Assembly (NCBI GenBank): GCA_002269645.1
Contig: NIVC01000272.1
Span: forward strand, 62,001-126,000
Length of the DNA stretch: 64,000 nucleotides
Direction of reading: 5' to 3'
Source of the DNA: Macrostomum lignano
Taxonomy: Eukaryota
Position 1 is the first letter of the stretch. Each line of letters starts with the position of its first letter. The notes under the pieces were generated by a model. That model was given only the letters and a program-made list of their open reading frames with translations. It was not told the DNA's origin and searched no databases. Of the stretch, positions 5,006 to 64,000 are shown one piece after another. A program made the position numbers and the translations under genes.

Positions 5006-40157
<35,152 letters not shown>

Positions 40158-42042: not shown

Positions 42043-42891
42043 ATCTACGGTCACCTTTTAAAGTGCCGAAGCTCTGGCGGACAGGCGAAAGAATTGTCGT
42101 GATATTCGCGAGGCATCAAAAGTTGGGCTACTGTGAAGTTCCACTTCGTTTAGCCTTCGTTTAGGCTTCGTTTAGGCAATAACACAGGCAATTTTCTATT
42201 GCCTATGCATGCTTGCTCACAATTTTCCAATTAGCCGGCAACTCTGACAAAGAAATTAGCTCGTATAAGCATACGCTTTCCACTGAATTACCTAGCATAT
42301 GCATAGAACGCTCTTACACTAATTAGATAAGTCATTCCGGCTGAGGGAATCTCTGCTGAGTAAATAGACTGGTTTCATCCCAAATTTCCTTTGTCGGATC
42401 GCGAGCAAACTCATGACGTCTGACTGGATAGCTGACGCACTCTGAACCTCAGCAAACATAAAGTTCTAACCTGCTGGCCCAACAGTCCTTCATTTGAAAC
42501 AGACAGTTGGTTTGTTCTAGAGTCCGCTTGCTAACTTGCCGAGATTCGGAACTTTACTTTGCATTCCGTTACAACCGCACGGCCCTCACTAGGCGTTTCG
42601 TCGACTGCCTGTTGGCTGACGCTGGCGCCCCGGATTCGGCCGGCGGCGCGGCTTTCATTCGCGACCTGGCCTTGAGGCGCGCCCTGTGACTTGTTGTTAT
42701 TCTGTTATTGTTGTTGTTATTCCCAAAGTTTAACGACTGTTGGGGTAAACTGATAATTTGAAGGTCCTTGTGATGGTTTAACTAAGATTTTAAGATCCAA
42801 TGGTCTTTACACTCGTATAATCGACAGTCTCAGACAGTTTCATTAATTGGCCTACCTAATGAGTTGCACAATATTCTGAAAGGATTTTTAG

Positions 42892-44276
42892 GATTCCACT
42901 AATCAGGAGATACAACTAAAGGTGTGGCTGCTATTGGTAAGCTCATAAAATGTTGTCTTTGAAGTTTCCCTACAGAGCTTTGATGCTAGCTGCAATTCAT
43001 GTTGTTATTGCGGCACTGGAACGACAGTCGCTTGGCCTGGAGAGAAAAGTTCAACTCCAGTCTGGACCATATCCACGCAATCACCCTTCCAGCTTCGTAC
43101 CTGTGGCAACCTGACGCATCTTTTTACGATGTGTGAGCCAATTCTGCTTGAAGCTAAATAGCTGCGCCTTTCAGAAAGTAATAAACTGGTTAAATAGTAT
43201 AATTATAACTCCGTCCGTCATGATTGTTTTCATTAAAACAATTTAATCTAGAGTTGAGCTCCTAGATGCCACGAAAGGCCGCGCGATACTTTCGGTGATG
43301 TCGTCAGGCATTGTGCTACAGAGCACCGGAATGACTCTGTCCACCAAGTGCAGCATGCAAATGCAGCTGTTCCCGTTTACGAACAAAACTGCTTAGTCAG
43401 GCTCTCGAGTCTGCAGCAAGTCACAGGATCGACTCGAATCCGCAGAATGATACACCGACTGGGTACGTCATGAAGAGCAGCGAGTTCTACATTCTGTGGG
43501 TCCAGTTAGAAAACTGGTCGTTTGGCCTCTATGACACAGCCGTGCTCCGGGTCGGATTTCAGGTGAGTTTTTGTCCGAAATTTGGTAATATGAGTAATTC
43601 GTGGGATAATGTTAACAGCCATAAAATAATGGACCAGGATTTGTAATTGTAGCGACTTCCGACTTTCTACATGATAAACCTGATGCTGCCCTGCATTCTT
43701 CTCCTTGGAGCCTCCGCGCTCGCCTTCTGTCTGCCTCCCGAGTGCGGCGAGCGAGTCTCCTTCAGCATCACCATCGTGTTGTCCATGTGCGTATTCCTGC
43801 AGCTGGTTGGCAACTACACGCCCACACAGAGCGAGTGAGTACCTCAGTGAGTACCTCGAAGTATCTCTATTACCGCATTGCCTTGAAGAAATTGATCCGA
43901 ATTTGACACGCTTCACATTCCAGCCTGGTACTTCAGCTTGGCCGTGCTCATGACAATTCTGAATGTGCTCTGCAACGCATTTGTTCTCAGCTGTCACTTC
44001 AGACAGAAGAGCAGCGTCAGCAGCCGGTTCGTCCGTGCACTCTTCCTCAACCGATTCGTTGTCGGAGAAAACTCTGAGCGGAGAGTCACACGCACTGAAG
44101 CCGATGCGGATGACAAAGTATCGGCATCTCAGACTTCCAACGGATGGAAGACAGTCGGATCTTCCGTTGGCCGGGTGTTCTTTAAAGTGTTTGTCAGCTT
44201 CGGAGTCGCAATGATGGTCGTGCCATTTGCTATTTTCTGTGTAAAATCTAATACTAACTGCCTTGGCGAGCTCTAG
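42892..44276 (+). pseudogene. nAChR-like Cys-loop channel gene A, probable pseudogene
   Basis: Exons 42892-42936 (45 nt, DSTNQEIQLKVWLLL), 43014-43132 (HWNDSRLAW...LWQPDASFYD, acceptor reads CGG not CAG), 43252-43562 (Cys-loop KCSMQMQLFPF..QNC with two -1 frameshifts), 43653-~43846 (M1-M2, PPECGERVSFSITIVLS, followed by in-frame TGA within a 12-bp duplication AGTGAGTACCTC), 43924-44276 (M3-M4). No signal-peptide exon recognised. Confidence 0.75.
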
Positions 44277-44626
44277 GATCCATGGAACTTATGAATAATT
44301 ATGATCTCGATTTTTCGCCTTCAGTTTTATACGAGTGTATCTAACATATGAGCTACATCTTTTTCTGTCAAAATGTCGGGAAAAATAAAAGGAAAATGGA
44401 AAAAGAGGCTGGCAAGTCAACGTTGACTCCTGTAATTCTATTTTCTTAAACAGTAATATTTTCTGCTCTTGCTACACCAAATTTATTAGCTCTGAAGCTC
44501 TTCTTTTACAAATATTGATAGCAGTGAAAGGGATAAAACAATGGCCAGAGTTTGGTGTTCAGATTATTTTGCAAATTAGCTCTAAGAAAGAATATTTTCA
44601 AAATTACAAAAACTTAGTATTTTTAC

Positions 44627-45184
44627 TGTGGTGTCTGGCCTGTTGAGTGCTCTTGCACTTGGTCGTTTGAGTTTTTGCATGCGCCCTAAGCGACCATCCC
44701 CGGACCAGACCCTACCGGCTGGTAGGGGGTCGCCGGCCCGGCTTGAGTCTCCCCGCGGCGGACACTGATTGGCTGGACTTGTGAGTTTGTGTTTTTCGCT
44801 CTAGCCCCCATTCAGTCAGATCTGCTCGGTGGGCACGCTGATTGGCTGAGGGGTCGTTTCTTTTAGTAGTGGTTCCATAGCTAGAGCGTCATCACGCCTG
44901 CGACTGTGACCACTGCAGCACAGCAGCGAAGTATATTGTATATTATTGTAGTACTGTACCGGTTACTTTATATAGTGTGTACAACATACAGTATCGAAAC
45001 TAGAAGCACTCAAGAGTGTCATCACACCTCGAGCCGCAGCGTGAACTCTGAGTGTCACAACAGCAGACGGAGCAACCTATTATCGCGTCGTCACGCCAGC
45101 TTGTACAGTATTCATATAAGTACAAGACAGAGCGTCACTACGCCTGCTATATTACGTATAACCTACTGTACCCGGGACTGGGCA
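44627..45184 (+). repeat. Unclassified dispersed repeat, copy 1 (internally deleted), with two CCAAT boxes
   Basis: Reverse-complement match to 50652-50970 and 51335-51570. Confidence 0.75.
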
Positions 45185-45645
45185 CTCCAGGCCCATCCAG
45201 TCATTTTAGTATCTGTGGGGCAGACGAGGACAGTTAAGCAGGAAAACCTTTACAATAGAAGAGCGAAAATGACATTGGATACAATTCAGAGACCTGCACA
45301 TTATTTCGAGTCAGCAACTTTAATATTAGCAGAAGATAACCGAAAGCCATTTATTCATAGAGGAGACTCTGCATATCGACAGCAGATTTATATTTGCACA
45401 GCATACAGTGATCGGTCTCCAGCCTGTGAGTCAGTTCACTCAACTACAGGACCTAGCTGCTGAGTCTGCTCGAACTCTCAAATCAGCTAATTGAGTCGGG
45501 TAAATACGATAATTTTAGGCAAAGCAAATACTGGACCATTCGTGTTTGCACAATTAATGCGGGGTTAGGACTGCACATTGGTGGCTACTAAACTGATCCC
45601 TACTTTATATTTGTGCTCACCGCCATCAGTCCGACACTGTCCGCC

Positions 45646-48600
45646 ATGTTTTTTCTCACTAGCCTCATCGTATCCTTCGCTGCTCTGCTTGCTGCTTCAA
45701 CCGCTGAAGTTGCCAATGACGTCTCACAGGACGCTGCCGTGATGGCGGCACTGAAGCTGGGCACCGAGTACAACAGGGCGGTCCGGCCGCCCCCGGACAA
45801 CGGCACCGCAAACACTGTGAACTTGTTTATCTTTCTGTACAGCCTCGCCAAAGTGGTGAGTTGATCTTCGTTGTTGCTCTTCCGGACATGAATTTACAGC
45901 AAGTATCCACTGAATGTTTCAGAACTCTGCGTCTCAGGAGGTGACACTGCAGTTTTTACTCGGGAAGGTAACTACAGAAGATAATTTGTTTTAATAATAC
46001 TGTGTACTAAAACCAGGAAATCCGGAGATTTTAGTTTCAAGTCGCATGACCAAGACGTTATTTTCACTCGTAATTCGTGATCGCGAGGCGATTCGAAGTT
46101 GTCTAAGTGATGGGTTCAGCCTTCTATAGCCTTTGATCGGAGACTTCTTGGGCCTCGGAGTGCAGAAATTAATCACTGAGCACTCTCTCCCGTCAGACGG
46201 TCAGTCAGCCCCAGGTAGCGAAGATACAAGCGGCTGGGTCCCCGATAGCTAAGAGAGGACAGCGAGAGACAAGCAGGGAGAATTGGAAAAAAAGTTGAAA
46301 TCAGCTAATCCAGAGATCAAACTAAACCCGCTGCCACCAACCCGCTGCCTCTGGAAATCGGGTTTCCGACTAGAAGGGGCTCTGAGACAACCTGCGAACC
46401 GGTTTCTTTTTGCTGCCAACCTCGAAGTCATAGCGGCTTCAATGGGCAGTGAGTTGCAAGTGTACTTGTATGCGCTAGTCGCTAGAGCGGGGGTTGGGAG
46501 TTGCTATTTCACAGTATGTACGTGCTTTCCACTCACCCTCTGTCTCTATCGTCTATACCCAATTATTCAAGTCGTTGTATCGCATTTAACCTGCGTATCG
46601 ATCTAATAAACGCCAAGCAGCTTCGTCAACTCTCAGTCGTACGGTATCTCTCTCTGACCATGCAGGGACAGTGTGGGCTTTTGCCGGGAAGTTCTGGCGA
46701 TTCTCTATGCACCAATGAATGCTCAATTAATACTCAGCAATAGTCAAAAGTTCCACTATCCAAGCGAGATGAAAATTTTATCACTTATTGCGACAACTTC
46801 TCACTCACAATTCAACCCTCAAGTTACGCCGCTACTCGTGGGCCGCCGCGAGGAAGGGAAAATAACAGTTTGATTTTTATGCAATACGCAGTCAGAATCG
46901 CGTTGCTTAATAACGCATGCGAGATCCCCTCGCACGCAGAAGTGCGGCGACTCTGCGGGGCGTCCTTTGTAAGCTGCAGCCAAGCCTTTTCAGTGGTATG
47001 ACGCAGCTCCACAACATTCTGTGGTGGATAACTCTTTTCGAATGCTGCATTTTAGGAAGTCCCAGACATGCTCGATGGGATTCATGTCTGGGGGACCGGG
47101 AAGGCCAGCGCAGAGTGCGCAGCTGTAGCTGTTCTTTCAGTTGACTAACACCATCGACTCGGTGTGGCGGCGCGTTGTCATCCTGGATATTTAAGGAGAC
47201 CCAAGCCACCCCAAGTGGCAATAAACTTTGCGCGTGCCTTAAGTTGCGTCGCTCGCAAAGTGGAAAAAATTAATCTCGCTTGGAGGGTGGAACTTTCGAC
47301 TGTTGCTGAGTATATGTACTTGCTCGCTTTTGGACTGAAAATTGTCCACTGGTCTGTAAATGGTGCTGATGGCAGAACTATCAGAGCCTTCAAGAGATCC
47401 CTAGACTAACTCTGAATGATTCCTTCCTGCTGCTTTGCCGCCTGGGACAGCACAAAAGTACACCCCTGGCAAATGGTTTGCCTGATTTCGGAATCTGACT
47501 GATTGATAGGTTAAGTGAAAGGAAGCTGCAATGCTTCGTTCCGCTGCGACATTCGACTCAATAAATTACAGCCACTCATCGTGGCTAGCAAGGCTAAAAA
47601 GAAAGATCGAACTTAAAAGAGAGAGATGCGATTTGGTTTTTCTCCTAAATCCACACTTCTTTGAAATTGTGTTGGAGTAAATAAGCAGTTATTCCCAGCA
47701 CATGAAAGCAAATAACTAAAAGTGCAAAGGGCTCGGAAAACAAGTGCGCTCCGATAGAGCAGGTCAAGAAAGCTTCTCAGCCAATAATCAGAGTTTCAAG
47801 CTGCTGGTGGCCAAGAAATTCACTGTGACAAAGACATGCAGCAGGGTGCTGCTGCTGCTCTAAGATGATTTAGATCTAGGGAGTCTAAAGCTTGCAGAGG
47901 ACGTTTCATCGACGTTAACCCGGCGCTTTCGGGGTACTTAGCTGCAGCGTCTCGAGCGGGCATGTGCACGGTGGCTTATCCAACCCGGTTATCAGACCGA
48001 CAGCCGGATAAACAACGTTTTCGAGAGCCAGGCCGGCCTTGAATATCCTTCCAGTGGCCAAATTGTTATACCAAGCGTCGAATTTTCTGATTGGACGAGC
48101 CCGGAATGACTAGCTTGATTTTGATTGGCTGAGCTTTCAGACCCTGAAAATCCTCTGCACCGGGCGACCTCTTAGACACCACAGGAACTTGACAGGTGCG
48201 GTCATAAATTTAAAAAGCACGGAAAATTCCAACTAAAAATATCTCTGCTAGAGATCCTGGCCCCAAAAGTTACAGGATTTTTTGTGTGGAACAACCAGTC
48301 GATTGAGTTAGGATAGAAAGTCCTAACGGGGATCAGAATTGGCGGGTCCTATGAAGCCAAAATTTGACAGGTACTGGATTGTAGATCAAAATCGACCCAT
48401 CAGTACAGCTGGTCTTTCGGTATTTTCTTTTCTTCTAGCATCAGAACAATTCTCGTATCTTTACGAGCAACACGAATTCACATGTACATGTCGAAATTCT
48501 CTTTAAATTTCTGTAGCATTGGTTCGATTCGCGACTGGTGTGGAATTCAACGCCTAATCGGACATTGGACACCACCATTCCCCTCTGGGTTCCGCCTCAA

Positions 48601-51600
48601 ATGGTTTGGACACCTGCTATTACAGTCGACACTGTGTGAGTTGACGAAAGTTTTTTAACCTGTTGACATCATCAAAGTAAAAATGTGCTTCGAACTTCGA
48701 ACGCAGAGTGGAGATGAAGCATGTTGTACTGGACGAGTCGCCTGTTTCGATCAGTGCAGCTGGATGGCTTCGTCATAGTACTGTGCTTCTCGTGACCTTC
48801 AAATGTCAAATGCAAATGCACCTGTTTCCTTTCGACAGTCAGATGTGTGGCGTTAGCATCCGGTCTCAAACACCTGCCACCACGGCGCTCAACTTACTTT
48901 TTGACAAACAATATTCTGTCGAAAGATACTTGTCAAAGAGCAACGAATTCTGCATCAAGAAGGTTTTCCTAAAGAAATTTAATATAGATGCTCTAACTGC
49001 GCCGATGCTTCTGCTTACGTTTCAGGTAAGAAAAATCGTAAAACAGTAAAAAATCTATGTACGAGCTGTAAATAATCAGCGGTCGCAGTGCGTCACCACA
49101 GTGCAGCAGTGTGTACCATGACCTTTGTGCCCGCTGGGCACTTATTCTTGCCTTTTAATGCCATAAACTACATTTAAGCCCGCTTGTAGGAGTCAAACTT
49201 ACTTTAATGCAAATTAGCGGGCAGTTAATAGTACATTAATACCCATGCTTTAAGGGCGTTAATGGGAAAATCAGAGGGCGCCGTTAGGCACCCGAGGATT
49301 TCTCATTAACGCCCGCAAAGCATGGGTATTACTATCATTGTGCCATAGACATTTGTGTCCTTGACAAAGTGGCAGTTAATACATTAACTGCCCGCTAATT
49401 TGCATTAGAGTAAGTTTGAAATAGACAATCGGGCGTTAAATGTCATTGACTGCCCGCTAATTTGCATTAGAGTAAGTGTGACTCGTGCAAGCGGGCTTAA
49501 ATGTAGTTTATGGCATTAAAAGGCAAGAATAAGTGCCCAGCGGGCACAAAGGTCATGGTACAATGACATTAACTGCCCGCTAATTTTGTCCCACTTTGTC
49601 AAGTACTATTGGTTTTGTCAGCCTAACTGAGAATAAAGCCATCCAAAGTGAGAATCCTGCCTACGCTGACTGCGAAGGGCCTGGCTGCGTGCAGCCTTAG
49701 TCTATGGGCCATAGACAATAAAGGACAAGCAAAGTGATAAAAAGCCATCCAATGTGAGAATCGATTGGTCTATGCGTCGTATTCTTTTATTTTGCTTGTC
49801 CTTTATAGTCTATGGCTCATAGACTAGGCTGCACGCAGCCAGGCCCTTCGTATTCAGCGTAGGCAGGATTCTCACATTGGATGGCTTTTTATCACTTTGC
49901 TTGTCCTTTATAGTCCATGGCTCATAGACTAAGGCTGCACGCAGCCAGGCCCTTCGCAGTCAGCGTAGGCAGGATTCTCACTTTGGATGGCTTTATTCTC
50001 AGTTAGGCTGACAAAACCAATATTAGACAATAATATCATAATATTATCTAAGAGTTTAAACATTCAGCGGACCATAAAACCATAGAAAACCATAGAAAAC
50101 CTAGATTGATTCGTATAGATGAAATTCAATTTTTCAAATTCTATTTTCGATGGCTAAAACTGAATTTAAACAGTTCAATTCAGACTTTAAACTCACAATC
50201 ACTGTGACTAAAATGTCAGAACACATGTGTGCTCAATCAGACGTTTTCACAGGCCAAACAACGGGGTAGGAAGCGCAGTGTGTAAGCTGAGCAAACCAGT
50301 CTAGGCTGCATTCTTGGCAACCATGATGGCATCCACAACTGACTCCGCAATTCTCTGCAGTACCATGAGACGCCAATCCTGTATTAGATTTCGTCTGGTG
50401 GACTCTCGCTTCGTTTGCAGAGTGGGTGCGACTTGTCTGAATTTAACTGCACTGTGTCTTAAATTCAGGGTTCTGCCTGCGCCCGAGCGATGGGCCATAG
50501 ACGTTTTGACCAATAGAGGAAAGTACGTGTAGAAACTTTAGTTAAATATAATTGACAGGGTCTTGAAATAAATTCTCGAATTCATAAACAAAACAAAAAA
50601 TGCTATACATGCAGTACTCATAAATATTGTCGTAACCCGCGTCGTTTTGGGTTCCCAGTCCCGAGTAAAATATATTATACGTAATATAACAGGCGTAGTG
50701 ACGCTCTGTCTGTACTTTTATGGATACGAGCAGGCGTGCGACGCCCTGCGATAATAGTTCGATCCCTCTGGTGTTGTGACACTCAGAGTTCACACTGCGG
50801 CTCGAGGTGTGGTGACACTCTCGAGTGCTTCTAGTTTCGATACTGTAGGTTGTACACACTATATAAAGTAACCGGTACAGTACTACAATAATACACAATA
50901 TACTATACGCTGCTGTGCTGCAGTGGTCACAGTCGCAGGCGTGATGACGCTCTAGCTATGGAACCACTGCTACGGCAAGGCCTCAGAAAAGCTAAAGAAG
51001 CGAATGAACTCGGGGTTCTACCGGTGCCAGAAGCTGTGAGGCTCGTTCGAATATCGCTACCACTTGACCGCTTTATTTGCTCGCAATCAATTGAGTCCTC
51101 GCAGTAAGAGACCGTCTAGACACGGCTCGCTTGAGTATCACATGCAAAATTAGGAGACTTCGCAGTAAGACACCGTCTTTACGACTCGCTTGAGTATCGC
51201 TAGGTTAGTTTGAAGAGCTAGGCGAGGGGAGTGGAGCGGAGTGCGGCCAGCTGGCTGGGCCAGGCTTGAGCACTGTATACCACTTAACAGGGTAGAGGGG
51301 CAGACAGCGTGAGAGAGAGAAACGCCAAACAAAAGAAATGAACTCTCAGCCAATCAGCGTGCCCGCCGAGCAGATCTGACTGAAGAGGGGCTTGAAAAGA
51401 AAAACACAAAAACACAAGCCCAGCCAATCAGTGGCCGCTGCGGGGAAAGACTCCAGCCGGACAGAGCGCCCCCCCCCCAACCAGCCAGAACTGGTCTGGG
51501 GATGGCCGCCTAGGGCGCACGCAAAAACAACTAAAAAATTGCAAGAGCACTCAACAGACCAGACATCACAATATACGAGCGTATTTTAAATATATAAATA

Positions 51601-52422
51601 AATTACATATATAATTAAATATATAACTAAAAATAAATAATATAATATGAAAATATGAAGGCCAACATCACGGACTACTTAAGTATAAACGACAATTAAG
51701 TAGTCCGTGGCCAACATATGCGTATGGTTATTTTCAGAGACGGGTGGCGTTCTACGTGACGAACCTGCTCTTTCCGAGCATCCTCCTGCTCGCCATCTCC
51801 GCACTCGCATTCCGAATGCCTCCAGACTGCGGCGAGCGAGTCTCCTTCAGCATCACCATCGTGCTGTCCATGTGCGTGTTCCTGCAGCTGGCTGGCAACT
51901 ACACGCCCACGCAGAGCGAGTCCGTGCCGCTCATCAGTGAGTCGCGAGATGGTTATTGTGCTGACCGAATCTCTGTACATGTATGCTTATGCGGTCACAA
52001 TTTCCGTTGCAGCTTGGTACTTCAGCATCGCAGTATTGATGACAATTCTGAACGTGCTGTGCAATGCATTCGTGCTGAGGTGTCACTCCAAGCAGCATAA
52101 AAATGCTTACGTCAGCAACCGGCTGATCCGTGCTCTGTTCCTTAACCGACTCGTGACTGGGAGGAAGCCACAGGTGGATGCTGCACAAGATACAGCTGAC
52201 CAGTCTGAGGGCTCTGATGGAGCCATCCCGCCAAGTCCCCTAACAACGACCAATGAGTGCAGCATTGTTGTAGCGTCAGCCGACAAAGTGTTCTTTGCGA
52301 TGAACATCTTCGTCACTGTGCTTACAGTCATAGTCACGAGTGCATTTGCAGTCAGTGCGTATTCGAACAATTGCATTGAAGGAACCTTCTCTTCGTTGGT
52401 TGATTTGGTCAAAGACGAATGA
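45646..52422 (+). CDS. nAChR-like Cys-loop ligand-gated cation channel subunit, gene B, intact, 433 aa, non-alpha type
   Basis: Exons 45646-45855, 45923-45967, 48517-48635, 48707-49025, 51738-51936, 52013-52422; 1302 nt open frame, all GT-AG. Signal peptide, YNRAVRP, WFDSRLVW, Cys-loop CQMQMHLFPFDSQMC, M2 GERVSFSITIVLSMCVFL, four TM segments; 45-nt exon as in nAChR genes; AATAAA at 52547. Confidence 0.9.
46733..47310 (-). mobile_element. Internally deleted Tc1/mariner element in intron 2 of gene B
   Basis: About 38-bp TIRs (CTCAGCAATAGTCAAAAGTTCCAC.. / ..GTGGAACTTTCGACTGTTGCTGAG), TA on both flanks, transposase C-terminus on - strand: QDDNAPPH, WPSRSPDMNPIEHVWD (one frameshift), PRRVAALLRARGSRMRY-stop. 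Confidence 0.88.
49113..49562. mobile_element. MITE/foldback element in gene B intron 4
   Basis: Inverted arms GTACCATGACCTTTGTGCCCGCTGGGCAC.. / ..GTGCCCAGCGGGCACAAAGGTCATGGTAC. Confidence 0.8.
49607..50022. mobile_element. Second MITE/foldback element in gene B intron 4
   Basis: About 155-bp near-perfect inverted arms TATTGGTTTTGTCAGCCTAACTGAG.. / ..CTCAGTTAGGCTGACAAAACCAATA, TA termini. Confidence 0.85.
50652..51570 (-). repeat. Unclassified dispersed repeat, copy 2 (inverted, longer)
   Basis: Reverse-complement match to 44627-45184 plus about 370 bp absent from copy 1. Confidence 0.75.
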
Positions 52423-53990
52423 ATGAAGAGAAACGTGATAACGTGATGCTACGGTGCGCCTGTGCACCATGAGCTTATCAGTAGTGACTGAACTTTTGCT
52501 ATCGATAGCTTTCATCTTAAATTTCTAATATCTTGCGTAGTCTCGAAATAAAACTGAAAGGTTTGTGTACTTTATACGAGCGTAAATGGTTGATAGCAAT
52601 CAGACTTTCGGTAACTACTATAACTTAACTTAACATTACAATTATCTTAATTCAAACGGTTCTACACAAAATTCTGAAGATATGGCTTGGGATAGTGTTT
52701 GGAAGACTTGCGATCTTGAATGCTGGAACTTTGCTACGATTATGTTTCTTCTATTCAATGGATGGATGTTTCGCTTGCATAGATAAAGTTTTAATTCTTT
52801 TATCTGTGGCAGGGTGCGCATCGCCACCTACTGCTTTTTGGAATTCACTCGAAAACCCTGCGATTTTCTCAGAACTATTGTAAGCCAGAGTATTTTCGAA
52901 ATATTAGTTGTAGCCCATTCTCGATTCGCGAGCCTTTAATGCGTCACTTTTGCATAAATTTTCTCTGAGGTTGATGCACTTGATCGGGAAACCCGCGCGT
53001 CTAGTTGATCCCAAATGCTTGGCCTCACCAATGCGAATTTACCCTTTGTTTGATAGACTTGCGGACCCCGTATCATAAACTCTGTATTGTCTTGTGATCG
53101 GTAGTAACAGTCTTTTACTGTGAAGACTCAATTTATTACATAGCTAGGGTTAAGCTAAAGTTTTTTGCCATAGTCAGAGGTTTCGGCATACTCTGTTCGA
53201 TTATAGTTTTTCCTATCTTTCAGCGCTTCTCCCTTTTGCTCACTTCCTCGCACTGAACGCAACGTTTTTTTGACTCACCTACCCTGTTTGTTAAAACAGT
53301 TTAATACTTATCTCATCCCTGTACTTCGTTTACTTCACCTAATTTTTTGATGCCCGTTTTCGCTCTTTGAGCATTGCGTTATACGAGTAGCGATTAATTT
53401 TTTTCGTGCAAGATACTCGGTATTATGATATCTAATATTTCAACGTTAAGACGGTAGAGGGGTTCTTTGTTTTTATTGGAATGTGCTCATGCCAAGAAAC
53501 CTGGTATGGTTTGAGGAGTAAAGTTTTTGTTTATACCATTGTAAGTCTGTACTATACTACCCTCACTCGTAATCGCCTAGTGCACCGGCCTATTCCGCTT
53601 CAAGCCACCTTTCTCAGCTCCGACTTTCTAATTTGTTATAACGTACGAGTGTAAATTGCAAATTATGCAAACTTATCAACCCAGGCTAAAGCCTGTGTCA
53701 ACCCCGCCTTTTATAAAATTGAGAATCAATACGTACCTGGCACAAGACTCAAGTGTGCTCAACTTGAGTATCTTGCTTTGTGTAGCTACTATTGGCAATG
53801 CGGCGCTAGCGCCAAGTGTTAAGTTCTCTATTCTTCATATTCTCTTGTTAACACAGTAAATAAGGCTTTCGTGACAATGCAAACAACAGAATATTGCTAT
53901 TGAATTAGAGTTTATTCATACACGCTATAAAACCCATTGGCTCAAGTTGTTCCCTCATGATGTGTCGCAATCAGTCAAACTCCGTCCGTC

Positions 53991-56407
53991 ATGGTTCCTC
54001 CCAGTTGCCTCATCGTCTCCTTCGCTGCTCTGCTCGCTGCTTCAACCGCTGAAGCTGCCAATGAAGCCTCGCCGGACGCTGCTGTGATGGCGGCGCTGAA
54101 GCTCGGCACCGAGTACAGCAGGGCGGTCCGGCCGCCCCCGGACAACGGTACCGCAAACACTGTGACCTTGTTCATCTTTCTGTTCAGCCTCGTCAAAGTG
54201 GTGAGTTGATATTTGCTATAGCTCTTCAAGACATTGATTTAATCAGCAGTAGTCTTTGTCAACTTCGCAGGACTCAGCGTCTCAGGAGGTGACACTGCAG
54301 TTTTCTCTCTCGAAGGTCAGTACTTGCTTATATCAATTAAAATAGAGCGATATTTTGTCGAATTGGTTTCATTAAGAAAAGAACCAGCTAAAAGCTTTTA
54401 AAACCTCATCGTAGCAATGGTTCGACTCTCGACTATCATGGCTGACGAAGCCAAATTCGTCATTCGGCGGAGTGCGGAGAATATCGGTTCCCTCAAAAAT
54501 GGTCTGGATACTGGTCTTACTTTCGACAATGTGTGAGTTGATGTCCCCTGTCTTTTGCCATCTCGCAGCAATTTATTAATTATGTTTCCCAATCTATTAC
54601 AGGTTGGGAATAAAAGACCTTTCACTGGACGAGCCGCCTGTTTCAATTTTTATCAATGGATTGGTTCACCACCAGAAAGAGCTGCTCGTCACGTTCAAGT
54701 GTCAGATGGAGATGCAATATTTTCCGTTTGACAGTCAGAAATGCGGCATTAGCATCCGGTCTCAAAATTTACCTCACGAGACAATGCTGAAAACAAATTT
54801 CAACAGAGACTTTCCTACGGAAAAATACTTGTCAAGGAACAACGAATTCTGCATCAAGAGAATCTTTCTGGAGAAGCATCGATTGGATTTAGTTGATGCA
54901 GTATTCTTGCGCTTAAATTTCAGGTAAGAGAAAAAAATGTGCACGATAATTTCTAAGGATGATTTCGTAATATTTATACACACACTTGCTACTGGGCAGA
55001 GCAGCTCAACGGTCTGACTCTCGCATCATGACCCTGGTTCGATTCCGTGCGAGGCCATATTCATTTGGGGCTTTTGTGTACTTAAATTATCCAAAGGCTT
55101 TCGTGCGATTCACCCCTATGAGATTATGATTATTATTTCAGCTCGTATATGCTAGGCCGAGGCATCCTATACCACTTTTTCTCTTTAGCCTCTGCTTAAG
55201 CCTTTCGGAACTTCAGGCCTCTTTCAAACTATAGAGCCTTTTTCGACATGAAATACGCGTTTTAGCCCACCCATTGGAGCAGGATTTGCGCCTTGATGCA
55301 TGGACTGTTTCTGCGTTGCATGTTTCTCTAACCGGTTTGCTCGGAAGCCGAGCTTCTTGCTCCCAATTGAAATCACCTTTGAGTATGATTATCAATTTAT
55401 TGAATTTGATCTAATCAATACGAGCGTAAATGCAAACAAAAAATAGTTTACATCAATGTACCGTTTGATTGTGTCTTTAGCGCCTGTGCATGATGCTAAA
55501 CTTCCCGTGGACTGACCGTTTCACACGTGTTCATAAAGCCTCGGTAGTCTTTTGCTCCGAGGCTCATACGCTTATGAACACGTGTTCACGTTCATGTTAC
55601 GTGAACACATGAACACGTTATGAACACGTTTATGAACACGTGTTCATAAAGCCTCGGTAGTCTTTTGAACGTAACAATTAGACAGATCAACCTAAAAGTG
55701 TTATTGCATTGCTTCTCTTAAGAGACGGTCGGCGTTCTACGTGACGAACCTGCTCTTTCCGAGCATCCTCCTGCTCGCCATCTCCGCACTCGCATTCCGA
55801 ATGCCTCCAGACTGCGGCGAGCGAGTCTCCTTCAGCATCACCATCGTGCTGTCCATGTGCGTGTTCCTGCAGCTGGCTGGCAACTACACACCGACACAGA
55901 GCGAGTCCGTGCCGCTCATCAGTGAGTCGCGAGATGGTCGTTGTGCTGACCGAATCTCTGTACATGTATGCTTATGCGGTCACAATTTCCGTTGCAGCTT
56001 GGTACTTCAGCATCGCAGTAGTGATGACAATTCTGAACGTGCTGTGCAATGCATTCGTGCTGAGGTGTCACTCCAAGCAGCACAACAGCGCTCACGTCAG
56101 CAACCGGCTGATCCGTGCTCTGTTCCTCAACCGACTCGTGACTGGGAGGAAGCCACAGGTGCATGCTGCACAAGATACAGCTGACCAGTCTGAGGGCTCT
56201 GATGGAGGCATCCCGCCAAGTCCCCTAACAACGACCAATGAATGCAGCATTGTTGTAGCGTCAGCCGACAAAGTGTTCTTTGCGATGAACATCTTCGTCA
56301 CTGTGCTTACAGTCATAGTCACGAGTGCATTTGCAGTCAGTGCGTATTCGAACAATTGCATTGAAGGAACCTTCTCTTCGTTGGTTGATTTGGTCAAAGA
56401 GGAGTAA
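53991..56407 (+). CDS. nAChR-like subunit gene C, complete exon set but two single-base deletions (pseudogene or sequence error)
   Basis: Exons 53991-54200, 54271-54315, 54415-54532 (118 nt, one C short at TGG ATA C[C]T GGT), 54603-54923 (321 nt, one T short at GCA GT[T] ATT), 55723-55921, 55998-56407. Confidence 0.8.
54995..55070 (+). mobile_element. tRNA-derived SINE remnant in gene C intron 4, orthologous copy at about 59400-59485 in gene D
   Basis: AGCAGCTCA A-box-like and GGTTCGATTCC B box; same position in both paralogs. Confidence 0.5.
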
Positions 56408-58087
56408 TTTTATCTTGTTTCAATGCTATTAAGCACCAGTGCAGAAATACGTGCGTATTTTGCTATCGCTAGCAAAGGTGGTCAGGATTTTAAGTAAATA
56501 AATAATCTTTCCACTCGTTGAAAACTAAAAAGTGACATGGAAAAATCTAATGCTGAAAAAATTCAGTCTTGTTCCGCTTTCAAGATCTCGGAGGCGTCTT
56601 GGGAAAGAGAAAGAGCTAGTTTCTCAGCGATGCACTGACAGTACATTGACAGACATCAATGACAGAGAAACGATTTGAAGAATGGGTAGATGCTTTAGCA
56701 TTTATATTTAGGGCAGCTTTGCATGATTAATGCTCGACCCTATCAGAATTCTTTCAGTGGGAGCGGAAAGAATTTCTTTATATGATAAGGTTTTGGAATT
56801 TAACTCAAGATGCACGTGAAACTTTTCGTGTATTTTTTGTACGCTTGTACGCTCGTAAAATGAAGAAAGATGTTGCCTAGTTCCGCTTCTCAGTGACTTC
56901 TTTGTCACGCTCATTTGAAAATTTGTAACGGATTAAAGTTTGACTGATCTCGTTTTCTATTTCTTGTCCATATCGTACCTCATTTTGGTGAAAATTTCGC
57001 ATCATATTCGTAGTTACCTCGTAGTTTTTTATGGGACTCGGTAGCTGCCCATGGACTGACGGGATGAATTTTGATTATGTTCGTGTGCCAGGATACTTTT
57101 CGTCGATGCTGCCTCGCAACAAGTACATTAAAAATGGAGGTTCAATTACTGGTTTTATACATATTTAACTGATCCATGACAGTTTATTTGACGATGCCAT
57201 TAATTACGAGCTAATTGGTTATGCTGGATGCGGTACATGCAGAGGTCCACAGCCTATAAACGTGCGACAACAAAACGCTCTCAGTAAAAAACTAACGAAA
57301 GCAGATTTAAATCTTGCGTAGAAAATCATGCAGTAAAACAAAAACCTAAAAATGTTTCAACGAAACGGAAAAAATAACTCCAGAAAGTTAACTAGCAAGC
57401 TTCTACCCCCCGTCAGGGAGGCAATAAAGAATGGAATAAATGTTTTGAATAATCTACATGTAGCCTTTGAGCTTGTAGAGTCACTGTTGTTAGTTTCTGG
57501 AGGAAAATGATGTTTAAAGCAAAACAGCATCAGCCCTGAAAGCCAGCTGTGTAGCCTGAGATATCAGCTCCCCTTTTTGAGCTTTGGCTCTGAGCAACTC
57601 TCTCACACTACGCTCGTAATGTGTTATCATTTTTTCAGCTGATAGTTATTTTACACAATTGGAAAACAAAAATACCAGAAACAACTCTTGAATTTTCGTT
57701 TTCCTCTAAAACATACGTGTTACCCACGGGTGCAACTTGCATCTTGTAGAAAATTATTCCGCCGAATCGCATCTCGCCGAAAAGCATTTTTCCGACATGC
57801 ACATAATCAACACTCTCAGTTCGTCGAAGCAAAATATGAAACTTTGAAGTGTCTCATTTCGCTGAAAAGCATCTCGCCGAAGTTTTCAAAGGCGTGTTAC
57901 GAGCTAATAGGTCATAAGATGCCACCATGGTTTTTACAGATTATCCACTAGTTCAGAGGATTATTCAGTAGGTTCTGATTCAACGCGTGATACGGTACAC
58001 CAAACGGTTATTAAATCAGTCACGAATCCGAGTGTTGTACTTCTAAGTAACTGTAACTGTCTCTGTTAACCACCCATGGACAATATA

Positions 58088-58678
58088 GCATTTTGCGTTG
58101 CACTTAAGCTTACGGGCAAATCACTTAATCCTAAGTGGCAGAATTACACTGGCGAGGGCAGCTGCCGATCGATTCTATGGTCTCAACTGGTGGCTAATGG
58201 GCAATTTACTTTAGCCTTAGGGTACAGACTTAATCCATTCATGCTCTATCGCAGTTTGAAACGCTTTCAATCGGCCGCCCAGTGGGTGGTGCTGTGGCAA
58301 GGGCATAATTTTAATCGGTCAATATGAGCAACATATGAGCAAATGAGCAAAGTATGAGCAAATGAGGGAACATCGGCAGGTGGTTGGTTGGCCATAACAA
58401 AGTGGGAAAGTAAACAACAGCAGCTGCAACACAGTTCTGGCAATGAGCCAAAATGAGCATAACATGGACCATGTTGAGCTCATTTTGCTGCGAGCCTTAG
58501 CTTCTAGTTCGCTTTTATAGAGCATGAATGGATTAAGTCAGTGCCCCCAGGCTTAAGTAACTTGCCCGCCAGCCAACGGTTTGGGCCATAGACTTGATCG
58601 GCAGCTGCCCTCGCCAGTGTAATCCTGCCACTTAGGATCAAGTGATTTGCCCGTAAGCTTAAGTGCAACGCAAAATGC
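58088..58678. mobile_element. MITE/foldback element immediately upstream of truncated gene D
   Basis: About 165-bp inverted arms GCATTTTGCGTTGCACTTAAGCTTACGGGCAAATCACTT.. and reverse complement at 58516-58678. Confidence 0.8.
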
Positions 58679-58819
58679 AAAGTGCAACGCAAAAGCAAAA
58701 TGCAAAATGCCAGAAATATACTTGAAAATCCCCCCTAGTCTCTGAGTTGTGCGAATAGTTTTCCCACAGATATAAAATACTTGGCAATATTGGTGCAGGA
58801 CAACTTAATCAGCATTCAG

Positions 58820-60824
58820 CACTTTTACTCACTATCGACTATCATGGATGGCAATGTCTAATTCAGCATTCGGCGGAGTGCACAACATATCCGTTCCTTC
58901 AAAATTGTTGTGGATACCTGATGTTACTGTTGACACTTTGTGAGTTGAGGCCCCGTTTCTGTCGCCCGCCATCTCGCAGCAGTTTATAATGCTTTTTCCC
59001 CATGTCTTACAGGATGGAGATAAAGGATGTTACCCTGGACGAGCCACCTGCTTTAATTTTTAACAGCGGATTTGTTCAACACCAGAAAGTGCTGCTCGTC
59101 ACGTTCAAGTGTCAGATGGAGATGCAATATTTTCCGTTTGACAGTCAGAAATGCGGCATTAGCATTCGGCCTCAAACTTTACCGCACGAGACAATGTTGA
59201 AGATATTTTTTCTACAAAACTTTTCTACAGAAAAATACTTGGCAAGGAACAACGAATTCTGCATCAAGAGAATCTTTCTGGAAAAGCATCGACTGGACGT
59301 ACTTGATGCGGTTATTCTTGTGCTTAAATTTCAGGCAAGAAAGAATCACGTGCACTTTATTTTCTAACGAACTATTTCGTATTTTTATTACATTTACTTG
59401 CTACAGAGCAGCTCAGAGGTAAATGTGTTGACTCTCGCGACATGACGCCTGTGTGTTCGATTCCGTACGTGGCCACATTCATTTGGCTTGTGCACGAAAA
59501 TTAACCGAAGTTTTTCGTGCCATTCAAACCTGTTAGGGCCAACATCCAAGGCACCGAGAATGCACCTTGCCTGACGACTAGAAAGTCAGAATCGCTGTAC
59601 AGCCTGGGTGAGCTTGTATGAGTGCGTGCCTGTGTACAGTAGTAAAATTACCTCAGTGCTTGTGGGACAATGTCACTGAAGGCTTTGCGCCAGGGCGCCC
59701 GCAGCCCTCTTTCAACCTATAGATACTAATTCGACAAGAAATACACATTTTAGCCCACCCATTACAGCCGAAGGGAGGAGGGACCTTGATGGACTGTTTC
59801 TGAGTTGCATGTTTACTTGCTCGAAATAATTCGTACCAAAACCGATCGCGATATTTCTTGCGATCGGTTTGGTACGAAGGCCTCGCTTCTCGTTCCTAAT
59901 TGAAATCCTTTCAAGTAGGACTACAACTTTGTTGGATTTGACCCAGTAATTAAATGCAAACACAAATAAGTTCACTTGTATGCATGTACCGTTTTATCGT
60001 GGATTTAGAGACTGCGCAAGCTGCTGAAATTCGCATTGAACAGATCGTTTTGCGAGTTAAAAAAGTCATGGTAGTCTTTTAAATGTAGCAATTTGGATAG
60101 ATTAACCTGAAAATATGCTATTGCATTGCTGCTTTCAAGAGACGGTCGGCGTTCTACGTGACGAACCTGCTCTTTCCGAGCATCCTCCTGCTTGCCATCT
60201 CCGCACTCGCATTCCGAATGCCTCCAGACTGCGGCGAGCGAGTCTCCTTCAGCATCACCATCGTGCTGTCCATGTGCGTGTTCCTGCAGCTGGCTGGCAA
60301 CTACACACCGACGCAGAGCGAGTCCGTGCCGCTCATCAGTGAGCCTCGAGATGTTCGTTCTGCTCACCAAATCTCTGTACGTGTATGCTTATAAGTTCAT
60401 AATTTTCGTTGCAGCTTGGTACTTTAGCATCGCAGTAATGATGACAATTCTGAACGTGCTGTGCAATGCATTCGTGCTGAGGTGTCACTCCAAGCAGCAC
60501 AACAGCGCTCACGTCAGCAACCGGCTGATCCGTGCTCTGTTCCTCAACCGACTCGTGACTGGGAGGAAGCCACAGGTGGATGCTGCACAAGATACAGCTG
60601 ACCAGTCTGAGGTCTCTGATGGAGACATCCCGCCAAGTCCCCTAACAACGACCAATGAGTGGAGCATTGTTGTAGCGTCAGCCGACAAAGTGTTCTTTGC
60701 GATGAATATCTTCGTCACTGTGCTTACAGTCATAGTCACGAGTGCATTTGCAGTCAGTGCGTATTCGAACAATTGCATTGAAGGAACCTTCTCTTCGTTG
60801 GTTGATTTGGTCAAAGACGAATGA
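58820..60824 (+). pseudogene. nAChR-like subunit gene D, 5'-truncated duplicate
   Basis: Exons ~58820-58939 (5' end degenerate, +1 nt), 59013-59334 (GC donor CAG|GCAAGA), 60140-60338, 60415-60824; no copy of exons 1-2 found between 56407 and 58820. Confidence 0.75.
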
Positions 60825-62117: not shown

Positions 62118-64000
62118 CATTGATTGCGGAGTGCGGCTCCTTCAGATGGGGACCCAATCGAGGGCACCCAGGAGCCGCGCCACCAAGTGACCATCGGCAA
62201 GGTCGTTTAGGTTATAAACTCCAAACAAGCGGCGTGTCGAAGCCAAGGCATCCAAGCCGCGGCCGCATGCCAAGCGACGGACTCGACGACCGCCTTGTAG
62301 ACAGTGCGGAGGGTGTCACAGTCCCAGCCCCACTCTCTGTTGGCCAGGGCGCGGAAGATGCTGCATCGGCGGTGCAACTTAGAAACAACTTCGGCCGTCT
62401 GGCACTTGAAGGTCAGGCCACCGTCAATCCAGACGCCGAGGTATCGTACCTCACGCTTGGTAGGGAGACGAGTGCCAGAAATCGACAGGTTTAGAGGGCG
62501 ATTTCGCTCGCTCCGATCGCGCGTGTACAGACAGCACTCAGACTTGGAGGGGTTTAGGTCGATTCTCAGGTCGGCAGCCCAGTTTTCAATGCGGTTTAGC
62601 GCAGTCTGAATGCGAAATTCCAGCTCGTTAGTGTTCCGACCGGTAGTCCAAATGCCGAGGTCGTCAGCGAATCCCCCGTAGCAGACCTGGGGGACCAGTT
62701 TGTCCCGCCAGTCGTTGATGTACAGGAGAAACAGAATAGGAGAGCTGACGGCCCCCTAGGGCACCCCCTCGCGGAGGGGCCGCCACTTGCCGACCTCCTC
62801 ACCGACACGCACAGCGATTTGACGCCCTTCCATGAAGCTGGCGAACCAGCGAATAAAGCGACCGGGCAGGCCTTCGTCCATAAGACGAGCGAAAAGCTTT
62901 GCCCGCCAAACCCGGTCGAACGCCCTTGAGCAATCGAGCGTGACGGCCAACGTCTTGAGGTGGGGCCTTCTTTCCCATCCGTCCTGGATTTCTTGCACGA
63001 GGCGAGCTATTTGTTCCTCGCAGCTCCGGCCGCGTTGAAATCCCGCTTGCCAGGGCTGCAGAGTGCCGTTGGTCTTGAGCCTATGCATCAGCCGGTCAGC
63101 ACCATCCGCTCCATGAGCTTGACGCAGATGGACGTAAGGCTGACGGGCCGGAAACTGGAGCAGTCTTTGACTGACTTTTCTGTAGCGCTCCCCAGCCGCA
63201 CCAAATTTTTGAGTACGTGCCCCAGAGGATATTTGGGGTCTTTGGTCTTCAGTCTTCAGTCTTTGGGGTCTTTTTCGTCTTTAAGGAGAGGCACGATGAT
63301 GGCCTTTTTCCAGACTCCAGGACAGTGGCCAAGGCTCCAGCAGCGGTTGAACACCTTGAGCCAGGCCAACTGCCAAGTTGTCGGCAGATTTTTAAGGAAG
63401 GCCGTTTCAATGTCATCTGGGCCACACTTTTTGGTGACATCCAGCTTGCATAAGGCACGCTGAAGTTCCCCAAGGGAGAACTGGCTTTCGTGGTTGGTGT
63501 TGCCCAGGGCCTATTTGCGGTCTCGACCTTAAAGGCGCGGTCACGGGCATCATGTTTGAGAGAGCTACGAGCTAATAGACACATAGAAACGCCCAAAGGC
63601 GTTAGCCTTTTCCAGGTCCGTGCGGTGTTCGCGATTGTTAACAACGATGTTCTCGTTTTTCGCCGTGCTCTTATCCCCAGTCTCCAGTGTCTTGATGGTG
63701 CGCCAAATCTTCTTAGGGTCGGATGAGGAGGAAAGGTCCTGGACGTAGGATTTCCAGAACTCCTGCTTCTTTTCCGCACAGCGCTTATTGAGCTCCGCAT
63801 TTTTGTTGCGCCAGGCATCAGGATCGCCCAGGCTTCTGAGACAATTTTTTTCCTCGCGAATGTGAGAAAGCTCCGCATCCCAGTACGGTTTTTGATTTCC
63901 ACCGACTTTCTTGAGCGGGATGCTGGCGCTGGCGGCCTTGGACATTCTCTTACAGAGACGGTCAATTTGCTCTTTAATAGTACCCTTGTTGAGTCCATCG
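61850..64000 (-). mobile_element. Decayed non-LTR retrotransposon (LINE) reverse transcriptase region, continuing beyond window end
   Basis: Minus-strand motifs FRPVSLTSI.VKLMERMV, QAGFQRGRSC, LDCSRAFDRVW, GVP*GAVSSPILFLLYIND (TAG at 62756-62758), FADD at about 62660, YLGVWID; frameshifts present; (CAA)n run at 62065-62116; exact 3' end and clade not resolved. Confidence 0.9.

Follow-up and report, generated by a model that had tools for sequence, protein, structure and literature searches.

Molluscs and other lophotrochozoans have undergone massive lineage-specific tandem expansions of diverse genes resembling nicotinic acetylcholine receptor (nAChR) subunits (Jiao et al. 2019, PMC6896357). 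Of the 33 alpha-type subunits of Crassostrea gigas, only 13 possess all principal binding residues (PMC6896357), and both the annelid Alpo orphans and the cephalopod chemotactile receptors (CRs) have been discussed as non-cholinergic derivatives (PMC10338036). The clade described below belongs to a flatworm outside these surveys (PMC6896357, PMC10338036), Macrostomum lignano, whose pentameric ligand-gated ion channels (pLGICs) have so far been catalogued only as "nAChR-like" (PMC6881066). Here we analysed a stretch of 64,000 nucleotides (nt) from assembly GCA_002269645.1 of this species (contig NIVC01000272.1, positions 62,001-126,000), which we call the window and to whose positions all coordinates below refer. 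It had been proposed to hold a tandem cluster of four nAChR-derived cation channels that lack the aromatic box for acetylcholine (ACh), as candidate chemosensory receptors. In our reading, which we hold to be probable though far from certain, the locus is a Macrostomum-specific tandem array of cation-type pLGIC genes, and the subunit encoded by its gene B would not be gated by ACh via the canonical pocket but by another stimulus.

One intact gene in a tandem array

Copies were mapped by tblastn with pieces of reading frames, and exon models were built by hand from the sequence and then checked by script. Four collinear pLGIC-like copies (genes A to D) were located on the + strand at 42892-60824, where the original prediction had sited them, and none elsewhere in the window. 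The predicted cluster of four paralogues thus stood in number but not in kind, the copies being one intact and three damaged. The sole intact copy, gene B, spans 45646-52422 and comprises six exons with a coding sequence of 1302 nt (433 amino acids (aa)); its junctions are all GT-AG and its reading frame is unbroken:

Exon 1, 45646-45855, + strand: ATG, signal peptide, N-terminal helix and beta1; open frame with a GTGAGT donor
Exon 2, 45923-45967, + strand: 45 nt, NSASQEVTLQFLLGK, loop D strand, in which Leu replaces Trp
Exon 3, 48517-48635, + strand: 119 nt, HWFDSRL...WTPAITVDTV; loop A, in which Asp replaces Tyr
Exon 4, 48707-49025, + strand: Cys-loop, loop B (IRSQT), NEFC and a short loop C
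Exon 5, 51738-51936, + strand: pre-M1, M1 and M2 (GERVSFSITIVLSMCVFLQL), ending at PLI
Exon 6, 52013-52422, + strand: M3, short intracellular loop, M4 and stop codon

Exon 1 is homologous to exon 1 of gene C (89.5% nt identity). The short exon 2 has AG/GT borders and phase 0/0, and aligns with the DEKNQ..W segment of 5-HT3A. A 45-nt exon for the loop D strand is probably shared with the 5-HT3A gene, in a comparison of exon architecture that covered vertebrate nAChR and HTR3A genes; a literature search on 45-bp and 110-bp exon sizes found nothing. While introns 1, 3 and 5 measure 67-76 nt, introns 2 and 4 reach 2.5 and 2.7 kb. Intron 5 (51937-52012, 76 nt, GTGAGT...TTGCAG) disposes of a frameshift at the M2/M3 border that B, C and D might have been thought to share, because the GT-AG intron accounts for the change of frame: its excision gives PLITWYFS..., which aligns residue for residue with PLIG(V/E)YF of 5-HT3A and nAChRs. 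A repeat is present in inverted copies between genes A and B (44624-45185) and in intron 4 of gene B (50651-51573), with 81-89% identity, and is part of the reason why B spans 6.8 kb and C 2.4 kb. Open reading frames (ORFs) in the large introns of gene B and in the spacer between C and D gave no Pfam match.

A predicted cation pore without the aromatic box

Gene B has both domains of the Cys-loop (pLGIC) superfamily (Pfam Neur_chan_LBD, E 2.9e-27; Neur_chan_memb, E 2.2e-20), a C-x13-C Cys-loop with FPFD, the segment CQMQMHLFPFDSQMC, alignment to known members over M1-M3, and an M4 segment. Its M2 reads E(-1')RVSFSITIVL(9')SMCV(13')FLQL, that is, Glu at -1', Leu at 9' and Val at 13'. The M1-M2 loop carries PPDCGERVSF and lacks the anionic Pro-Ala-Arg motif, and the top 60 PDB matches of the whole protein are all 5-HT3A or nAChR. 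As read from these features, the gene B product is predicted to be cation-selective.

Its position within the cation branch is less specific than had been proposed. In phmmer searches of the PDB, the whole protein scored highest against 5-HT3A (122 bits), followed by nAChR beta2 (107) and alpha7 (98), and the extracellular domain (ECD) alone scored about 46 bits alike against 5-HT3A, nAChR beta4, beta2 and epsilon, octopus CRT1 and GluCl. With 5-HT3A on top and flat ECD scores, "nAChR-derived" is too specific, and what these comparisons support is a cation-type Cys-loop subunit of the nAChR/5-HT3 branch.

Residue positions were taken from alignments to mouse 5-HT3A (PDB alignment) and nAChR-like sequences, and revealed a binding site that differs from the canonical one at every aromatic position in gene B:

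Loop B Trp position: Gln in B, C and D (IRSQT, IRSQN and IRPQT)
Loop A Tyr position: Asp in B, C and D; Tyr kept in A (SFYDV)
Loop D Trp position: Leu in B, Ser in C, exon absent in D; Trp kept in A (KVWLLL)
Loop C: short, without vicinal Cys-Cys (CC) and without Tyr in B, C and D
Cys of NEFC: present in B, C and D; Tyr in A

The alignment bore out the loss of the ACh aromatic box in B, C and D: the Cys-loop, the three M2 residues and the residues that the original prediction had quoted for loops A, B, C and D and for NEFC were all correct, including the loop A Tyr and loop D Trp of A, which are the only elements of the box that this pseudogene retains. Loop C has about 22 residues versus 28 in CC-bearing sequences, and the vicinal Cys-Cys that marks alpha-type nAChRs is missing from its tip.

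Canonical nAChRs (alpha7, beta2, muscle beta, delta) share the fold, the Cys-loop, the cation pore, 9' Leu and 13' Val with this array, rank with 5-HT3A in Foldseek and phmmer searches, and stand at 23-25% identity; they differ by the Tyr of loop A, Trp B, Tyr C1/C2, the CC and Trp D, all missing in B-D. 5-HT3A is the best match of solved structure (about 27% identity) and has the identical GERVSF start of M2, the PPD(S/C)GE loop between M1 and M2 and an MX-like helix after M3. It differs from the Macrostomum sequences, which have no Trp B (W183 region), no loop D Trp (W90) and no loop C/E aromatics. The serotonin-site residues are replaced and the Macrostomum clade stands apart from the mouse, hagfish and fish 5-HT3 sequences, with which it did not cluster in the tree described below.

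Gene B hence combines two sets of features: it retains all elements required for folding, pentamerising and conducting cations (FPFD Cys-loop, pre-M1 Arg, -1' Glu, 9' Leu, 13' Val and PLI after M2), and it lacks every cation-pi aromatic used for ACh or serotonin (Tyr A, Trp B, the loop C Tyr together with the vicinal Cys, and Trp D). As the only source of a full protein in the window, it would supply a subunit with a signal peptide, a beta-sandwich ECD that bears the Cys-loop, the four segments M1-M4 and a short intracellular loop. Such a subunit would probably assemble as a homomer or with partners from its own clade into a predicted cation channel, which ACh or serotonin would be unable to open via the canonical pocket and which would instead be gated by some non-canonical ligand or stimulus.

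Close relatives in Macrostomum lignano

To place gene B we used the gene itself, a family profile and a profile of the proteins P0001-P0003. A word-indexed search of 5.8 billion proteins with gene B and with the family profile found relatives only from M. lignano. HMMER, run in full over 1.84 billion representatives, returned 11451 matches, whose per-domain scores versus gene B lay at 168-343 bits for M. lignano and from about 136 bits downward for all others. The upper range contains P0002, P0003, P0005, P0006, P0007, P0009/P0153 and P0170 (280 bits). The next tier begins with P0075/P0169, again from M. lignano, followed by nAChR-like proteins of Lottia, Pecten, Elysia, Lingula and amphioxus, and by hagfish 5-HT3A. 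P0001 is 100% identical to exon 1 of gene C and exon 4 of gene D, which assigns the window to M. lignano.

In a neighbour-joining tree of 175 subunit units (200 bootstraps, without anionic outgroup), the core M. lignano group was monophyletic in 91% of the bootstraps, and in 84% when P0153/P0009 and P0075 were included. In this tree the clade forms a long branch beside divergent hemichordate "alpha2-like" sequences; its tentative position lies outside the nAChR groups that bear the CC and separate from 5-HT3. At least nine lineages make up the clade, distributed over several tandem arrays. Tandem arrangement is typical of the family: P0005 and P0006 in UniProt have three to four units fused together, and the P0153 locus consists of three tandem family genes, present on each of the contigs NIVC01000984, NIVC01003722 and NIVC01003094 (GCA_002269645.1). 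This threefold presence is consistent with a multi-copy M. lignano genome, so that any locus, including the array in the window, may have several near-identical copies. The database searches and the tree support the lineage-specific expansion that had been predicted, with close relatives found only in M. lignano.

All core members have lost Trp B (Q, I, A or V instead), and the outlying P0169/P0075 retains it. A second mark of the clade is the Cys of its NE[FY]C motif in the beta9/loop F region, one residue past the position at which the GEW motif has its conserved Trp and NEFC has Phe; Glu205 and Cys207 (B numbering) are invariant in an alignment of seven members. Cys207 of gene B lies at about 48950 in the window, and equivalents were found in C, D and all members of the M. 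lignano clade. In most of these the Cys has no partner Cys in the ECD; in P0169, a second Cys in loop C (GACQE) is a potential partner.

The same tree also holds subunits without Trp B from bivalves, Lottia, a nemertean, hemichordates, nematodes and a tardigrade. Among divergent nAChR-like subunits, such loss of the box is widespread in molluscs, annelids, hemichordates and nematodes and already on record (PMC6896357, PMC10338036); being this common, it is on its own no pointer to chemosensation. The lophotrochozoan orphans share with the Macrostomum clade the cation-type Cys-loop architecture, tandem arrays, lineage-specific clades and diverse binding domains, and many of them lack the vicinal Cys or principal binding residues as well. 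They differ in being retroposed and intronless, whereas the Macrostomum genes have six exons, and in lacking the invariant unpaired Cys of NE[FY]C. Alvinella Alpo4, moreover, keeps the aromatic cage (PMC10338036), all of which is lost in B-D. Given the known lophotrochozoan expansions and the box-less subunits elsewhere, the locus is a new flatworm-specific addition to a known type, and its main contribution as it stands is to extend the many known orphan nAChR-like subunits by such a clade.

The combination of a retained pore and gating apparatus with lost binding residues would also be expected if B and its relatives were non-binding accessory subunits that join canonical ACh-binding alphas, like vertebrate beta1, alpha5 and beta3. 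We regard this as unlikely. It is indeed common across phyla for non-alpha nAChR-like subunits to lack CC or Trp B, and an ECD ratio of non-synonymous to synonymous substitution (dN/dS) of 0.4-0.55 fits relaxed constraint. However, Trp B is missing throughout the clade, whose lineages number at least nine and occupy several tandem arrays, and known accessory subunits are few and conserved, unlike this hypervariable clade. Furthermore, B and C without the loop D Trp would not offer an alpha partner a normal (-) face, which counts against an accessory role.

Constraint and probable gene conversion

We compared the two halves of the family's genes. Family-wide, the M1-M2 exon is 71-89% identical, versus 24-40% for the exons that encode loops A, E, B, F and C. 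Neighbours in the P0153 array show the same partition, with 94-97% aa identity in the M1-M2 exon and 32-47% in the ECD exons. Between genes B and C of the window, identity, synonymous divergence (dS) and dN/dS were as follows:

Exons 1-2: nt identity 87-90%, dS 0.16, dN/dS 0.65
Exons 3-4: nt identity 62-66%, dS 0.91, dN/dS 0.42
Exons 5-6: nt identity 97%, dS 0.056, dN/dS 0.36

Synonymous change differed between exons 3-4 and exons 5-6 of this pair (Fisher p 1e-17). Overall, dN/dS was 0.42-0.46 in exons 3-4 (0.46 for C versus D) and 0.27-0.36 in exons 5-6. Exons 5-6 of B (51738-52422), C (55723-56407) and D (60140-60824) are 97-99% identical in all pairs, and exon 5 of B has 97.5% nt identity with its counterparts; exons 3-4 of B are only 56-66% identical to those of C and D. 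For intron 5, identity is 97% in the B-C pair and 82-84% in the pairs with D. The near-identity of the channel halves of B, C and even the truncated D points to gene conversion in several rounds or to very strong constraint. Judging from synonymous sites and intron 5, the 3' halves of the three genes have probably been homogenised by gene conversion. Since the pore exon is near-constant and the exons for loops A, E, B, F and C diverge fast, what sets the copies apart would mainly be recognition.

Pairwise dN/dS within the array gave no signal of positive selection. Since dN/dS is below 1 everywhere, most of the divergence took place under constraint, and any pseudogenisation of C or D would be recent.

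A lineage-specific tandem expansion with hypervariable binding exons and an invariant pore is also what a chemosensory family would look like, one that arose independently of the cephalopod CRs, is expressed in sensory cells and detects environmental chemicals. The neurotransmitter site is lost as in the cephalopod receptors, according to a passage of PMC10338036 that cites van Giesen 2020. The cephalopod receptor CRT1 (PDB 8EIS, 9E6B) is likewise a nAChR-like cation channel without the ACh aromatic box from an expansion in one lineage. Yet it showed no specific affinity to gene B: its ECD score of 45.9 bits equals those of 5-HT3A, nAChR and GluCl, and with close relatives in M. lignano only, the clade belongs to an independent lineage rather than to the cephalopod CRs. 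Sensory expression and hydrophobic agonists, which in the Macrostomum clade would be hypothetical, have been demonstrated for cephalopod CRs. Neither did we see a sign of positive selection, and the same features occur in many orphan nAChR-like subunits that are probably functionally diverse (PMC6896357). We thus consider a chemosensory family quite improbable. Equally slight is the credence that we give to a more elaborate version, in which the clade would consist of independently evolved non-neurotransmitter sensors with a remodelled pocket, possibly including a free thiol, that detect environmental or metabolic chemicals as a flatworm counterpart of the CRs.

Damaged copies and the state of the array

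Copies A, C and D, and the reading frame that ends upstream of A, are arranged as follows:

End of upstream reading frame, 42588-42689, + strand: 73% identical to residues 58-90 of P0170
Gene A, pseudogene, 42892-44276, + strand: exons 2-6 at 42892-42936, 43014-43132, 43252-43562, 43653-43846 and 43924-44276
Gene C, 53991-56407, + strand: six exons at 53991-54200, 54271-54315, 54415-54532, 54603-54923, 55723-55921 and 55998-56407
Gene D, 5'-truncated, 58820-60824, + strand: exons 3-6 at 58820-58939, 59013-59334, 60140-60338 and 60415-60824

In the window, A is a dead copy, D is 5'-truncated and C is frameshifted twice. Gene A is 44% identical to gene B at the aa level and carries two frameshifts and an in-frame stop. 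Its exon-3 acceptor is GG instead of AG, its Cys-loop exon (exon 4) is readable only across three frames, and its M2 exon contains an in-frame TGA (43836-43838) in addition to a 5-nt deletion at the M2/M3 border. No exon 1 of A was found within 2.9 kb upstream; the upstream reading frame stops at 42689, about 200 nt before exon 2, which leaves no room for one. The remainder of P0170, to which this frame is similar, forms an intact A-type subunit. At a paralogous locus the neighbour is thus the same and the A-type gene still works, while the A of the window has decayed.

Relative to P0001, gene C has lost 1 nt at 54510/54511 and another at 54902/54903, which reduces its exon 3 to 118 nt (versus 119) and leaves exon 4 one base short. 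With an N inserted at both sites, its translation equals the M. lignano UniProt protein P0001 over 375 aa. Since P0001 reads through both sites, an intact C exists in another assembly or copy, and the frameshifts in the window may be real lesions or assembly errors. Exact-sequence look-ups with P0001 and several ORFs of the window matched no independent assembly or transcript. For gene D, no exons 1-2 were found within 2.4 kb upstream. Its exon 3 has 120 nt versus 119, with one extra base at its start that would clash in frame with a phase-0 exon 2, and a GC donor follows exon 4.

Several observations speak against a working, non-cholinergic gene B subunit. With three of the four copies damaged in the window, the array may be decaying. 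The exact gene B protein was absent from the protein collection searched, where its best match is 74% identical. Lacking the binding residues, gene B could serve as a structural partner of ACh-binding alphas in a receptor that is still cholinergic. The ECD dN/dS below 1 indicates constraint and not diversifying selection. Finally, an AlphaFold2 model of P0001 from an alignment of eight sequences was of low confidence (predicted local distance difference test 50.6, predicted template modelling score 0.37); its pattern of helices and strands agrees with the pLGIC fold, but Foldseek searches with this model retrieved 5-HT3A and nAChR chains without discriminating between them, and thus inform on fold class only.

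Decay of the entire locus after genome duplication, with B merely not yet disabled, would account for the damage to A, C and D and for the lack of an annotated gene B counterpart in UniProt or NCBI. It would also fit the swollen introns 2 and 4 of gene B with the repeat in the latter. The high redundancy of M. lignano loci, which are present in about three copies that are nearly identical, likewise counts for such decay. Nevertheless, the 1302-nt frame of gene B is open with canonical splice junctions throughout, dN/dS is well under 1 in all parts, gene C is intact in the source of P0001, and the family-wide conservation of M1-M2 indicates working channels. A non-functional locus is in our view very improbable.

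If gene B and its relatives do form working channels with a non-cholinergic agonist, they would represent another independent re-use of the nAChR/5-HT3 scaffold for a new ligand, in a tractable, transgenic flatworm model. An invariant pore next to hypervariable binding exons, maintained by gene conversion, would then be a tidy example of modular receptor evolution.

Public gene models and neighbouring features

The public M. lignano models for this locus are wrong, in that they fuse neighbours, skip the 45-nt exon and carry antisense tails. The P0001 model leaves out the 45-nt exon 2 and joins gene C, just before its stop, to exon 4 of gene D. In the P0002 model, the C-terminal tail is an antisense translation of an M2 exon.

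Upstream of the array, a voltage-gated Ca2+ channel alpha1 gene occupies 5400-40200 on the + strand. One of its ORFs (31818-32870) contains the Pfam domains Ion_trans, GPHH and Ca_chan_IQ; its best named relatives are type-A/Cav2-like, and no M. lignano protein was among the results of a protein search with this ORF. Introns of the channel gene harbour three minisatellites with units of 24 nt (x122, 5584-8508), 30 nt (x49, 24227-25707) and 56 nt (x25, 33573-34969). Downstream of the array, a reverse-transcriptase fragment (RVT_1, E 2e-11) lies on the - strand at 62210-62755 and is probably a retrotransposon remnant.

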